Shown: positions 17,301 through 26,300, counted from the first letter of the stretch. The stretch is 64,000 nt of DNA from Bugula neritina (GCA_964035545.1 OZ037769.1:1922001-1986000); one strand, 5' to 3'. Notes: generated by a model from the sequence alone, not told the origin. Program-made: numbers and translations.

Positions 17301-20300
17301 ATATATATATATATATACATTCGTGAATAAACTGCCATAATACAGAGTTCCCTGATTCCACAGGCTAGTTTACTTGCCCACCTTTAGTTATATCTCAGTT
17401 CCAGCTGTGTTGGGGTCTGCAGATACTTTTGCCTAGTTTCAATGCTTTAAAAATTTGTTTTAATTTTCTAGGCCCATGATTTTGAGTTTGTTATAATAGT
17501 TACAAAGTATATGTGGGCAGCTACACTAATGTCTAGATGTTTATTTAGAGTAAATTAAGGGCGCTTTCGGATTCCCTACGCGTAGCCTACTGGGCTCATC
17601 GATGAATTTGCTCACTTTCTCTCCGTCGAGTACCCCTCGATGAGCTTCTTTTTTGATGGGGTACGCGTTGGCTACCGAATGCATTGCGTAGGGGTGCACG
17701 TAGCACTCATCGAGTAGGGCAACAAGTTTTTAATATGATCTTCGACCTTACTGACTGCACAAGTATTGACATTTATTTTCATAGTACGCGCTGGGCGGGA
17801 ACTACTAATTTTAATAGTATTAATTATTTCTTTATCAATGTTTTTTAGTCAATCACTATAACTTTTGCTGTAAAATTACATTTCTGTTTCATTCATATTG
17901 TGTTGCTATAATAGAACATGTACAATGTTGTTTACCATCGTTATAATTGTATCGGTTTGTGTTTGTGTTTGGTTGCAAGATATGCTTTAACTACTAGCCA
18001 ACTTGGCAACAGGTTTTCGAGTTTATTAACTGTCAAATCGTACCCTATAAAATGGGAAACATTAGAAATTGTATAAATAAGTAGTCACAATATAAATCAA
18101 AATTCAGAGGAACACTATGAATATTACAGAACCAAAAAATTGACATGAACTATTGTAATTCTAATAAACTTACAATATTGATGCGTGGATAAAAATCTTA
18201 GCCATCACAATACCGAAACCGATAGTTTGTTCATACAAAGTGTGTAAATATGGCGGTTTGATCATGATACACTGACTCATGCAGTACAGTGAATGAACTA
18301 GCTCTGCCAGCTAATAGTAGCTTTGGTGAAAGCTTTTGAAGCTTGAAAGCTTTAATGATTGGCTGCCTGCCAATACTTCTGGGTGGCATACCAATACATC
18401 GGTGGGGTCGAATTGTTTGGCAGATACTATTCTGACAAATATTGATAAATTATGTAAATCAAAACAAACAAAACAAACAAAACAAAATAGGATCAGTCAC
18501 AGACCATGAAATTCTTGCACCAATCCGCTGACCCCTCCGCGCACCAGCCCGTCCCCCGAAAAACGGTTGAATGCAAACCTCTCCAGCGACACGAGCGTAC
18601 ACGCGGCCAAGAAAGTAGATCAGTCATTTATGGGTTCACTTCGGTTAATAAAGCCAACCTATGCACGCTGCGGGTTATGATAGTGTCTTTACAGCCTACA
18701 TAGTCCCTCAGTTTCCCCGCTACCTTATAGTTTTTGTAGGAAAGGGCTACTTTCCTTACTACGCCATCCTTGCTCGGATATACTTGATGTACTCGAGCTA
18801 GTTTATACTGATTACGCAGTTGATTTGGATCCATAACAACTACAACATCTCCCACCTGAAAGTTTCGTCTTGGGGTATGCCACTTTTGGTGATGAATCAG
18901 TGTGGGTGCATACAATTCGGTCCACTTCCGCCAGAAGTCATCTGAGACTGTATTTACCAGAGCCAGTCGCCCCCTTAAGGAGTAGTCTTTATTCCAGCTG
19001 CCAGGATTCTTGATGAAGGGTCGTCCAATAAGTTGGCAGTTAGGTGTTAATATGTTGATCTCGGAGTCTGAATCTGGCAGTAATCCCAATGGCCTTTCAT
19101 TTAGCGTGTTTGCAGCTTCAGTGCAGATTGCAAGAAATTCTGTAGGTGAAAGTCGGCGGTTGCTCATTGAAAATGTGAAACATCTCTTGACAGCCTTTAT
19201 GAGTGATTCAGCAGCGCCCTGATACCAGGGGCTGTCACCGGGTCCAAATTCCCATTGCAACCCATTTTCTGCACTGGTTTTCTTGATAGAACCTTTGTCC
19301 ATGCGTCTCCACATATCTTTGAGTTCTTTTTCTGCTCCAGCTAACTGTGTTCCAGGATCAGAATAAATCTTGGATGGCCAGCCACGAATGTTGACGAATC
19401 GAGTTAATGCCAACAGGAAAGAATCACTGTCATATCCGAAAACTGCTTCGATGTGTGCTGCTCGTGAACTGATGTCTGTGAATATTACTCCATAAGCTTT
19501 GCTCGAAGTTCTAGTCTGTTTTTCTCCTCTCACAATATACGGACCAAAAAGATCTATCATTACATTGTTGAACGGCGGTCCGGTCGTTAGTCGTTCTGTA
19601 GGTAGACTTCCCATCAATTGATCAGTAAAGTGAGGTTGTTTGAATCGACACATTTGGCATGATGTTACTATGCCCCTAGCGACCTTGGATCCCTGCATAG
19701 TCCAAAACTCTTCTCGGAATCTTGCGAGTGTTGCATCTCGGCCACGGTGATAGCTGTCTATGTGTGCCTGCCGCATTGCCAAGTAGGTAAAGTAGTGAGA
19801 GGTGGGAAGGATTGATTGCATGTGCGTTTTAATCGCTGTCATGGGGTTATGCCTTAGGAGTCTACTGCCTACTATCCATACTCCACTCTCTGTCTTAATG
19901 GGGTGAAGTCTTGTATGTTTCCCTTTAATCTTGCTCAACTCAGAATCTATAGTGCGTTGTACCTGCTTCAGTAAGTAGAGTTTGGTCTGCCGTAGATCTT
20001 CCACGGTGATGAGATCAGATTGGATTCCCTTAAAACTTTTGTATTTGAAGATGTTGCGAACTCGAGCTATTGTCCATGTTAGACTCTTGAGGCTGCTGAA
20101 ATTTTTATATTTAATAAATGATTGGACTTCTGTTGATGCAGTGACGGTGTAAACTATTTTCTTCTCTCCAAAGACAAGCTCATTCGAGTCAGATGGCGAT
20201 TTTATATCCCATTGATCCTCAGGCAGATAGAGAAAATTTGGGCCTCTCCACCATTCACTCTCAGGTCCAATGTCATTGACAGGCTTCCCTCTTGTAAGCC

Positions 20301-23300: not shown

Positions 23301-26300
23301 GGTTTGCAAGAGTGTCGACTTGTGGCAGCGTAACAGTTTGCAAAAGTCCCACTTCACCGAGTTGGCTGTACGAACTTTCCACTGCATTGGCCATTTTGAC
23401 GAGTTCTCGTGCATCTCCTTCTTTTACTGGCTTTAGTTCTTGTAGATTGCTGAAGACTGCTTGCACACTCATGCTAGGATCATTGTAGACCTCTTCTAAT
23501 CTACACATCATTCTCTCGTAAGCTTGAGGCTGAGTTGCGAAGATTGGCTGAACCATCTCCAGAGCTTCGCCTGTGAGAAATTTTTTCAATTCACAAGCCC
23601 TATCGACATCATCGTAAAACATAGTGGCATACCTTAGCCACACTGACCTAAATTCCGGCCAATAGTATCTAGTGCCGTTAAATGGCTTGGGTTGTGAACG
23701 AGTTTTATGTATAGATGAATTGAAGTTATTTCCACCTGTATGTCTAGAGTTATAACTCATTTGAGTTGTCCCATTAGGGTAGCTATCATATGCATTGACA
23801 ACCGAGGAAGTTGCGCCGCGAATCAAAAATTCAGAATGAGCTGCACGATCAGGACTACCAGGTAGATCACGTACTGAGAATGTAGAAAAACGAACATCTT
23901 TGAGATTGGTACTTGCTATGACACCTGGATTTAATGCCAAAGCTTCACCCGATGTGTGATCTTCCCGTAGTACCTGCCTATCACTACCACTTGCTGTGAT
24001 ACCTGGATTTGGTGCAAGAGTAGCCTCATGTGTGCTAGGGTGTGATCTAGGAGGAAACAACCGACTCGACGCGACCATAGTCGGTGCATGACTCGCGCCG
24101 TCTGGAGGTGAACCCCCACTCATACCGCTCTCCGCGAGACCGGACCGGACCACGGACGGATCAGATTCACGGTGTTTAAAATTCATGCTCTGTGACTGAG
24201 CCCTTGACATAAGAGTAAACTTAGACATACAATAATCTAAAGATAAAATAACTTCATCTAGTTCTAATAATAAATCAGAAAAACCTATGGTATCTGCCAA
24301 ACTTTCTGAAAGAGCTACACATTTCCTATGATGTTCAGTGATAAGAGTATTGTCAGTACAATCAGTAACTAATCCATTGGCTTTCCTAATTGCTAAAATA
24401 AGGCTGTGCTTGATTTTATAGAATTTGCTATGCCAAGTATTACAGTCAGAAATAGCTTTGTCATAACTAGCCTTTACAGCTTGATAGTACTCTACTGGAC
24501 TCATCTTATTAACATAAGCAATGTCTTCCATAGACTCATCTGATGAAACGTATTCCAAAAAGTCATAATGAATAGTTAGAAACTCTTGATATGTAGATTC
24601 AAGCTGAGATCGCAGGCATTCCACTTGTGTAGAGTTGCTACTAGAGATTGCTGATTCTATGAGATTAGTTAGCATTGTTACCTTAGACCTCAGAGTAGTA
24701 CGTTGCTTCTTGAGATTAACTATGTCCTGTCGGTCCATGTCAGCCTCAGCAATATTGGTACTGTATCGGTTTGTGTTTGTGTTTGGTTGCAAGATATGCT
24801 TTAACTACTAGCCAACTTGGCAACAGGTTTTCGAGTTTATTAACTGTCAAATCGTACCCTATAAAATGGGAAACATTAGAAATTGTATAAATAAGTAGTC
24901 ACAATATAAATCAAAATTCAGAGGAACACTATGAATATTACAGAACCAAAAAATTGACATGAACTATTGTAATTCTAATAAACTTACAATATTGATGCGT
25001 GGATAAAAATCTTAGCCATCACAATACCGAAACCGATAGTTTGTTCATACAAAGTGTGTAAATATGGCGGTTTGATCATGATACACTGACTCATGCAGTA
25101 CAGTGAATGAACTAGCTCTGCCAGCTAATAGTAGCTTTGGTGAAAGCTTTTGAAGCTTGAAAGCTTTAATGATTGGCTGCCTGCCAATACTTCTGGGTGG
25201 CATACCAATACAATAATCATTCAGGTATTTTGATAATGCCTTGTGGATTTTGTAATGTACTATTTGTTCTTTTAAGTTATAAATCTTCACTCACTGCTCT
25301 AGTACTATGTATATACTAACTATTTTTCTCTAATTTAGGCCATTAGTATTATTTAGGCTAATCCAAACATCTCATATATTGCCATATAACTTCAATTGTG
25401 TAGTTACAATACGCTGTTGTCACCATTGTATTTTTATTGTTATTATCAAGTGATAGAATGACCTATTTCTATTGGTTTAGTAGCATTCTAGGCTTCACAT
25501 GCATAAATGAAAAAAACATTTCATTTGAATTTTGGTGAGTTGCAACACTTAAATGTAAAGTTGTCTTTTCTTTGTATTAGAGTATGTACACGATAGCAAG
25601 GCATTCAGCTTCTAACCAGGCTAAAATATCATATAATAATTTCAAGTTATAGAAAAATATAAACAATGTAATTGAAACATTGAATGAATGATGAAATAAA
25701 TATTTTGTTCCGTTGGTGTAAAGTAACGATAACTTCAAGTAGTAATTAATATTATTCAGCTTGAGAACTAGATTATATACCAAAGTTTAGCTGCTAGTAT
25801 AATAAAAGAAAAGTACATTGGAGAAAACAGCAGTTGAGCGGTAGTTATACAAACATTCTTTCTGCGAATGGTTTCGCTAATGTAGCTTTAAAATCTTAGT
25901 GTGCGCTATTAGTTACTAAGGCTAATAATTTGATCGACGCGTGTTCGGTAACCACGAGTACCCCGGGTACGGGTAGGGGTAAGCCTAGGGCCACACGGTG
26001 CGTATTTTTGCATGCGAAAATTGAAATCACAAGTAGCAAAGGTGTCCACTGTGCGCGTTGAGAAACGTTCGCACTTGTCACTCTGAATTTTCAACGCAAG
26101 TGCGAATCGTCTCTGTCATCATCACCTAATTGGCTGGTAGCTATTCAGCGAGCCCAATTTCTTTATTTAGTGCTATATTCCAGTAAATTGCGTTTTATTG
26201 AAAGCGAGTGCGATTTAAAAATGAAAGCTTTATTTATCACGCATCACTGACGCTACAGTGGACACCTTTGCTACTTGTGATTTTAATTTTTGCATGCGAA

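Follow-up and report, generated by a model that had tools for sequence, protein, structure and literature searches.

How does a long terminal repeat (LTR) retrotransposon begin reverse transcription when no tRNA CCA end can pair beside its 5' LTR? The question is raised by an element in a stretch of 64,000 nucleotides from Bugula neritina (GCA_964035545.1 OZ037769.1:1922001-1986000), which we refer to as the window. A complete BEL/Pao LTR retrotransposon of 7265 bp occupies positions 17948..25212 on the minus strand, as do all of its features described below, between 5-bp target-site duplications (TSDs) of ATTAT at 25217-25213 and 17947-17943. Its 451-bp LTRs (5' LTR, 24762..25212; 3' LTR, 17948..18398) have the form TG...CA and share one sequence. 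The sole open reading frame (ORF), gag-pol (18628..24738), encodes 2036 amino acids from its ATG, and the 3' untranslated region (UTR) is 229 nt long. The 16 nt that follow the 5' LTR (24761..24746), where the primer-binding site (PBS) lies, are GTACCAATATTGCTGA; they start with GTACC and contain no TGG, and a tRNA CCA end therefore cannot pair there.

An earlier sequence-only reading of this locus proposed that the primer is encoded in the element's own 3' UTR. We confirm the features on which it built, namely the coordinates, the identity of the LTRs, the ORF, the 229-nt UTR and a PBS unable to take a tRNA CCA end. Its broader proposition, that the element supplies its own primer, is very probably right, but the source of that primer appears to be a different one. 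As set out below, we consider it probable, from the sequences of this element and its relatives, that minus-strand DNA is self-primed from the element's own 5' leader, in the manner of the Tf1 element of fission yeast, and that the primer is assembled by splicing.

An intron within the LTR splits a complement of the PBS

In the 216-Mb genome, a junction between 5' LTR and PBS is present in at least 30 copies; most genomic copies are 96-100% identical to the window copy, and a few are 82-91% identical. When the 5' ends of the copies are aligned, they fall into two LTR forms. The first, which is that of the window, reads ...GCATCAATATT, then GTAAGT...TTTTATAG, then GGTACGATTTG..., while the second, represented by copies L023-L026, reads ...GCATCAATATTGGTACGATTTG... 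The difference between the two is exact: in L023-L026 and their 3' partners, LTR positions 226-354, and nothing else, are missing from both LTRs (window 24987..24859, and 18173..18045 in the 3' LTR). These copies have normal 5-bp TSDs (GAGAT, ATAAG). Given such precise loss from both LTRs, together with proper TSDs, we conclude that the intronless copies were reverse-transcribed from spliced RNA. Older intronless copies are also present (L028/L058, and a copy at C1:352047xx).

The segment concerned is a 129-nt GT-AG intron lying wholly within the LTR (24859..24987), GTAAGT...TTTTATAG, with canonical splice sites (donor ATT/GTAAGT and acceptor TTTTATAG/G, where a slash marks the exon boundary). 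Upstream of it is leader exon 1 (24988..25010, LTR positions 203-225), which ends ...GCATCAATATT and whose 5' limit we place at 25010 on one basis only, the 28-nt fossil copy described below. Downstream are the first five bases of leader exon 2, GGTAC (24854..24858), which after splicing would form the 3' end of the self-primer, with the cut presumably falling after C24854. The corresponding parts of the 3' LTR are exon 1 at 18196-18174, the intron at 18173-18045, GGTAC at 18044-18040 and the AATAAA polyadenylation signal at 18027-18022.

The spliced sequence, CAATATT/GGTAC, is a perfect complement of the PBS core GTACCAATATTG (24750..24761). The two form 12 Watson-Crick pairs, with pairing that stops right at the LTR border, and the spliced junction sits 92 nt upstream of the PBS. 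The number of pairs rises to as many as 15 in copies with A at PBS position 13. Taking every contiguous LTR 16-mer and every GT..AG junction as candidate primers, a Watson-Crick run of 12 anchored at the LTR border was matched by none of 300 shuffled PBSs, the best of which reached 10. Folding of the spliced leader gives all 12 pairs probabilities of 0.91-1.0, while the primer-PBS helix is absent from the unspliced leader. In all six leaders that we folded, whether spliced or contiguous, it is the primer-PBS helix that closes the minimum free energy (MFE) fold.

In the MFE fold of the spliced leader we also observe that exon-1 UCCAC (25003-24999) pairs with the AUGGA of the start codon (24738-24734), lengthening the primer-PBS helix and covering the AUG. 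The arrangement might toggle the RNA between translation and priming, or it might have arisen by chance.

Primer and PBS co-vary among lineages

If the leader primes, a change in one partner should be found with a matching change in the other, and this is what related lineages display. In the window the junction is CAATATT/GGTAC, the PBS is GTACCAATATTG and the intron is 129 nt long. Two lineages of the same genome, each at ~83% nucleotide identity, have introns of 106 nt (L029; junction CAATCTT, PBS CCAAGATTG) and 118 nt (L030; junction as in the window, with a PBS that pairs at 15/15 positions). Further afield, L091 (58% protein identity) combines a 167-nt intron and the junction CAATTTT/GGTAC with the PBS GTACCAAAATTG, of which CCAAAATTG is the paired part; L101 (49%) has an intron, the junction CAATT/GGTAC (from its 3' LTR copy) and the PBS GTACCAATTG; and L103 (45%) has a 99-nt intron, the junction AATAT/GGTAC and the PBS GTACCATATT. 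Primer and PBS co-vary in five intron-bearing lineages (window, L029, L091, L101 and L103), which come from different samples, and GT-AG introns of 99-275 nt are retained in all five.

Three further lineages are intronless, and in each a contiguous complement ends at PBS position 1. It comprises 14/14 pairs in L096 (46% protein identity), 23/23 pairs in L098 (53%) and 9+5 bp around a 2x2 loop in L097 (41%). The sequences of these three complements are unrelated to the primers of the intron-bearing lineages. L092, L093 and L102, which have no complete 5' LTR, were excluded from the comparison of primer and PBS.

By eye, the LTR of L103 (L103:1-790, Logan SRR31840191) appears to contain two more GT-AG intron-like segments upstream of the intron that splits the primer. 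If these are introns, they would give a multi-exon leader within the LTR.

It could be argued that splicing is incidental to priming and that the working primers are supplied in trans by RNA transcribed from intronless LTR copies, or else by the leader before splicing. Intronless copies do exist and have spread, and unspliced exon 1 offers 8-11 bp with PBS positions 5-15. That pairing, however, is weak (-8.6 kcal/mol) and stops short of the LTR border, and the fold of the unspliced leader lacks the primer-PBS helix. Furthermore, the split layout has been kept, with intact splice sites, in five lineages down to 45% protein identity. We consider it distinctly unlikely that splicing is incidental in this way.

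A fossil copy of the spliced leader

One locus appears to record the use of the spliced leader. On another contig, at G000:C8:38513-38540, 28 nt match without any difference the reverse complement of a sequence in which LTR positions 203-225 are joined to 355-359. This stretch stands directly after a 5' LTR that still carries the intron; the sequence diverges past these 28 nt, and ~340 nt of internal sequence are missing after them. A 28-mer of this kind is present only in spliced RNA or in intronless LTRs, and we read it as an antisense copy of the spliced leader. The simplest origin is that plus-strand strong-stop DNA copied the whole of the attached RNA primer and that an aberrant second transfer followed. 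If the locus did arise by primer copying, then the primer is the spliced leader, with its 5' end at LTR position 203 (window 25010).

Two other loci, likewise on other contigs of this genome, have rearranged 5' regions. At G000:C2:23752777-23752816 there are at least 40 nt of antisense intronless-LTR sequence, in an element that lacks a normal junction between 5' LTR and PBS. At G000:C3:14162425-14162509, 74 nt of the element's interior come between the PBS variant GTACCAATATTGGTGT and the resumption of the leader. Both may be products of aberrant strand transfer. The C8 and C2 loci, and the internal differences among copies described further below, were examined by means of exact patterns and alignment coordinates.

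PBS position 13 (24749) faces a U in the leader primer and is where the two first mismatch. Among 30 copies it is C in 15, T in 10, A in 4 and G in 1. On the copy tree of the flanking 1.7 kb it undergoes 11 changes, at least four of them forced by well-supported branches, which is close to the shuffled expectation of 13. Position 13 is a hot spot of recurrent mutation, and it marks the precise point at which the primer copy begins to differ from the template PBS. By analogy with the replication errors of Ty1 and of retroviruses, it may be a trace of heteroduplex resolution, or of non-templated addition, in plus-strand transfer.

A complement in the 3' UTR is confined to one subfamily

The sequence-only reading had placed the primer in a segment of the 3' UTR, TCAGCGGATTGGTGC (18517..18531), from which it would be cut out or folded back with its 3' end at C18517. 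The pairing itself is as described: the 15-mer (18531..18517) forms 12 Watson-Crick and 3 G-U pairs with the PBS, with one bulged A, and pairing stops at the LTR border. At -19.8 kcal/mol (RNAduplex) the UTR segment is the best partner of the PBS in the whole element, the runner-up reaching -14.1. This value was equalled by 0 of 300 shuffled PBSs against the whole element and by 0 of 2000 against the UTR, while 15 of 300 random natural 16-mers of the element (5%), unmatched in base composition, have an equally good partner. The duplex thus exceeds chance within the window copy, and its function is a separate question.

We weighed two explanations for this complementarity. The first is that the UTR segment is indeed the primer, while the second is that the pairing serves some other purpose.

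Beyond the strength of the duplex, the first explanation can draw on variation at the PBS. With C at position 13 the UTR duplex is slightly more stable than that of the spliced leader (-17.9 vs -16.6 kcal/mol). Either of the common states, C or T, can pair with the G in the UTR segment; this is the sole point about position 13 that favours contact with the UTR. In three copies, G-to-A changes turn G-U into A-U pairs. In copies with A or G at position 13, however, the complementarity is lost (-11.2).

Related elements are less favourable still. The best UTR-PBS duplex falls to -13.1 kcal/mol in L058 (91% identical), where 89 of 1000 shuffles are as good, and to -12.6 in L060 (UTR 80% identical), where 63 of 1000 are. 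In the five more distant lineages, relatives at 45-58% protein identity, it is absent: -6.6 kcal/mol in L091 (966 of 1000 shuffles as good), -7.4 in L092 (944), -8.8 in L096 (450), -8.1 in L098 (278) and -12.0 in L101 (547). The complementarity is therefore confined to the young subfamily of the window, and its loss in related intact elements is what the sequence-only reading had itself named as counting against its model. Furthermore, a primer in use is copied into the PBS in each cycle, which should have cleared the three G-U pairs and the bulge, yet they are there in all of the ~28 copies. The C8 fossil shows the leader, and not the UTR, copied at the PBS. The UTR segment is also locally paired in the MFE fold of the UTR, and the overall fold of the UTR is no more stable than those of shuffled sequences (z = -0.98). 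Faced with a better, co-varying complement in the spliced LTR leader, we regard a UTR-derived primer ending at C18517 as extremely improbable.

The second explanation is that the UTR and PBS make a real, young and subfamily-specific long-range contact, which does not prime and would be compatible with self-priming from the leader. Its role might be to occlude the PBS or the start codon, or to join the ends of the genome. The pairing is statistically significant in the window subfamily, the UTR segment is invariant or conservatively changed in ~28 near-identical copies, and C and T prevail at PBS position 13. Invariance, however, proves little among copies that are 96-100% identical. We see no compensatory changes, the changes present in L058 and L060 break the pairing, and in L091 and L092 a partly similar UTR stretch is nonetheless unpaired with the element's own PBS. 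A long-range contact of this kind seems to us unlikely.

The 3' UTR also contains a (TTTTG/TTTG)n microsatellite (18440-18490, minus strand), the length of which varies among copies and is shorter in L058 and L060.

Host RNAs

Could a host RNA prime instead, be it a tRNA fragment, a mitochondrial tRNA or some other small RNA, with the complementarity between LTR and PBS being no more than a structural stem? Elements of the BEL/Pao group are described as tRNA-primed (profile of the International Committee on Taxonomy of Viruses, ICTV; PMC8742986), and our tRNA check covered only 35 distinct sequences (57 genes, 17 amino acids). Among these 35 we found no 3'-anchored match to the PBS, which has no TGG; the longest 3'-anchored run, Gly and Arg tRNAs included, was 0 with CCA and 4 without it. 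Internal matches were likewise lacking among the sampled tRNAs. A host tRNA that pairs as well as the element's own RNA, which the sequence-only reading had allowed for, was thus not met with in this sample. ARAGORN found no tRNA in the window, and Rfam found nothing tRNA-like in the element, its lone match being SNORD105 at 22 bits against a threshold of 45.

The search extends beyond tRNAs. The PBS complement has 30 exact matches in the genome, every one of them a PBS of the element itself, and the 16-mer complement occurs at no non-element locus. The PBS is wholly different among related lineages and always matches the LTR of its own element, and the C8 fossil copies the leader, including bases past the paired part. 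Priming by a host RNA is, in our judgement, very improbable.

How a spliced leader might prime

The observations above suggest the following scheme for self-priming from the spliced leader. Transcription would start in the LTR, at or upstream of position 203. The 129-nt intron would be spliced out, joining ...CAUCAAUAUU to GGUAC, and the junction would fold back onto the PBS 92 nt downstream. The leader would then be cut after GGUAC, presumably by the RNase H of the element, and the new 3' OH extended through U5 and a short R, yielding strong-stop DNA of the ~92 nt downstream of the cut. An AATAAA polyadenylation signal (24836..24841) lies within leader exon 2; R is probably short, ~40 nt, ending at the poly(A) site after AATAAA, downstream of the primer. 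After the first transfer, synthesis would proceed into the 3' LTR, through its GGUAC, its intron and its exon 1.

Such a scheme would account for the persistence of the intron. Because strong-stop DNA would copy only what lies downstream of the cut, the upstream part of the LTR, intron included, would be inherited from the 3' LTR, and most progeny would therefore keep the intron whatever happened at the 5' end. Where the intron of the 3' LTR is spliced as well, copies and lineages intronless in both LTRs would result. Plus-strand strong-stop DNA would copy the attached RNA primer, which would keep the PBS matched to the leader, producing the co-variation, and could leave read-through fossils.

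A number of points weigh against self-priming from a spliced leader. We deduce splicing, as well as where transcription starts and where the leader is cut, from DNA. For the scheme to work, a single RNA would have to be spliced in its 5' LTR but not in its 3' LTR; otherwise priming would have to occur in trans. A primer of 28 nt would pair with the PBS through its 3' 12-15 nt alone, and the scheme does not explain what becomes of its 5' tail. A full copy of the primer predicts A at PBS position 13, which is C or T in most copies. The fossil is one clear locus, the tRNA set is a sample of the genome, and L097 is a weaker case of complementarity than the other lineages. Finally, four lineages were left out: L094, on a contig that breaks off within the LTR intron; L095, a 27-kb gene model from Watersipora; L099, whose LTR ends are ambiguous; and L100, a tandem assembly repeat.

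A C-rich tract in place of a polypurine tract

We found no polypurine tract (PPT) in its expected place immediately before the 3' LTR; the sequence there is the C-rich tract ..CGACCCCACCGA (18399..18414). The motif CCCC.CCC.TCCG(A/G) adjoins the LTR start TGTAT... in nine lineages (window, L091, L092, L094, L096, L097, L098, L102 and L103), down to 41% protein identity.

We also considered pairing of this tract with a G-rich stretch of the UTR, and rejected it as mostly non-significant: 24 of 300 shuffles were as good in the window and 25 of 300 in L091, and in the other seven lineages between 45 and 266 of 300 were.

Classification and other features of the element

The single ORF carries the Pfam domains Peptidase_A17 (PF05380, E = 7e-44), DUF1759 (PF03564), DUF5641 (PF18701) and Integrase_H2C2 (PF17921), and the same set is found in relatives. 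With these four domains in one ORF, the element belongs to BEL/Pao: a Pao-type aspartic protease and gag and integrase-C domains share one polyprotein, and the LTRs, identical over 451 bp, have TG..CA ends and are flanked by a short TSD, ATTAT. Among named organisms, the bryozoan Watersipora subatra has the closest relatives of the polyprotein, at 44-50% identity.

Copies of the element differ in their interior. The region at window 20590-22114 (element positions 3099-4623) is 1.5 kb long in the window copy and ~0.44 kb in most genomic copies. Copies of the short form, with or without the intron, align to the window copy as far as position 3098 and resume the match at 4623, and the long form spans the whole of a 2.9-kb query at three loci only. 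The short form would be without part of the region that contains the protease. We considered whether the shorter interior is a hallmark of intronless copies and rejected this; most copies have it, intron-bearing ones included, and it is therefore unrelated to the LTR intron. Just beyond the element, at window 16327-16506, are about five tandem copies of a 30-nt AT-rich unit.

Discussion

The closest parallel to the priming proposed here is that of Tf1, in which the leader folds back, the first 11 nt of the RNA pair with the PBS and cutting of the RNA duplex is expected to release the primer (PMC7175516). As in Tf1 and Tf2 of Schizosaccharomyces pombe and in the Tf1/sushi group, there is no tRNA PBS, and the PBS adjoins the 5' LTR and complements the element's own leader ~100 nt upstream. 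Three differences stand out. The first is that Tf1/sushi elements have a Ty3/gypsy chromovirus polyprotein, while the Pfam domains here are those of BEL/Pao, making the element Tf1-like by its putative mechanism and not a member of the group. The second is that Tf1 involves no splicing, whereas the complement here is split by an LTR intron and is formed only after splicing. The third is that, in contrast to the 11 paired nucleotides of Tf1, the fossil suggests a primer of 28 nt of which the 3' 12-15 nt are paired, with cleavage by RNase H a presumption in our case.

Self-priming, which is documented for Tf1/sushi, has also been predicted from complementarity between PBS and leader outside Tf1, for Tcn1-like chromoviruses and for the TAR lineage (Houba, Osr-1) of plant Ty1/copia elements (PMC6317226). 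Our prediction is of the same kind, but those elements are from plants or fungi, belong to other superfamilies and have a contiguous complement and no LTR intron (PMC6317226). Priming of the copia type, by an internal tRNA-Met half, likewise uses a PBS without the TGG that pairs with CCA; there, however, the primer is a fragment of a host tRNA, and no sampled tRNA matches the PBS here.

Among BEL/Pao elements themselves, the ICTV profile of Belpaoviridae (Semotivirus) gives a PBS of 18 nt that is the complement of a host tRNA, either tRNA-Arg or tRNA-Gly, together with a PPT of ~10 nt (PMC8742986). The present element resembles the canonical group in its gene content, polyprotein domains, LTRs and 5-bp TSD, and departs from it in that the PBS of its clade matches the element's own LTR and a C-rich tract replaces the PPT. 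The PBS is not discussed by de la Chaux & Wagner (2011), and the Sinbad paper brings up the C. elegans BEL element Cer7 solely in connection with env and YVDN. In literature of which our coverage is incomplete, we found no report of self-priming in BEL/Pao or of a natural LTR intron that assembles a primer, and this is absence of evidence only.

Taken as a whole, the picture would be of a widespread clade of animal BEL/Pao elements in which nuclear splicing of a wholly intra-LTR intron creates the primer, only spliced leaders self-prime, and the intron is transmitted via the unspliced 3' LTR. With no PPT and a conserved C-rich site of plus-strand priming, both primers would then be unconventional. 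We put the chance that all of these statements hold together at somewhat better than even.

For the biology of these elements, a BEL/Pao clade that is found in samples from several hosts, and in which the PBS always matches the element's own LTR, would extend self-priming to a third superfamily of LTR retrotransposons. A primer split by an intron would be a new link between host splicing and retroelement replication, and a simple switch between RNA that is competent to prime and RNA that is not. It would explain why an intron persists in an LTR, and it predicts lineages with intronless LTRs and fossils of primer read-through, both of which we observe. It also means that annotation tools that seek a tRNA PBS and PPT motifs will overlook or misjudge such elements.

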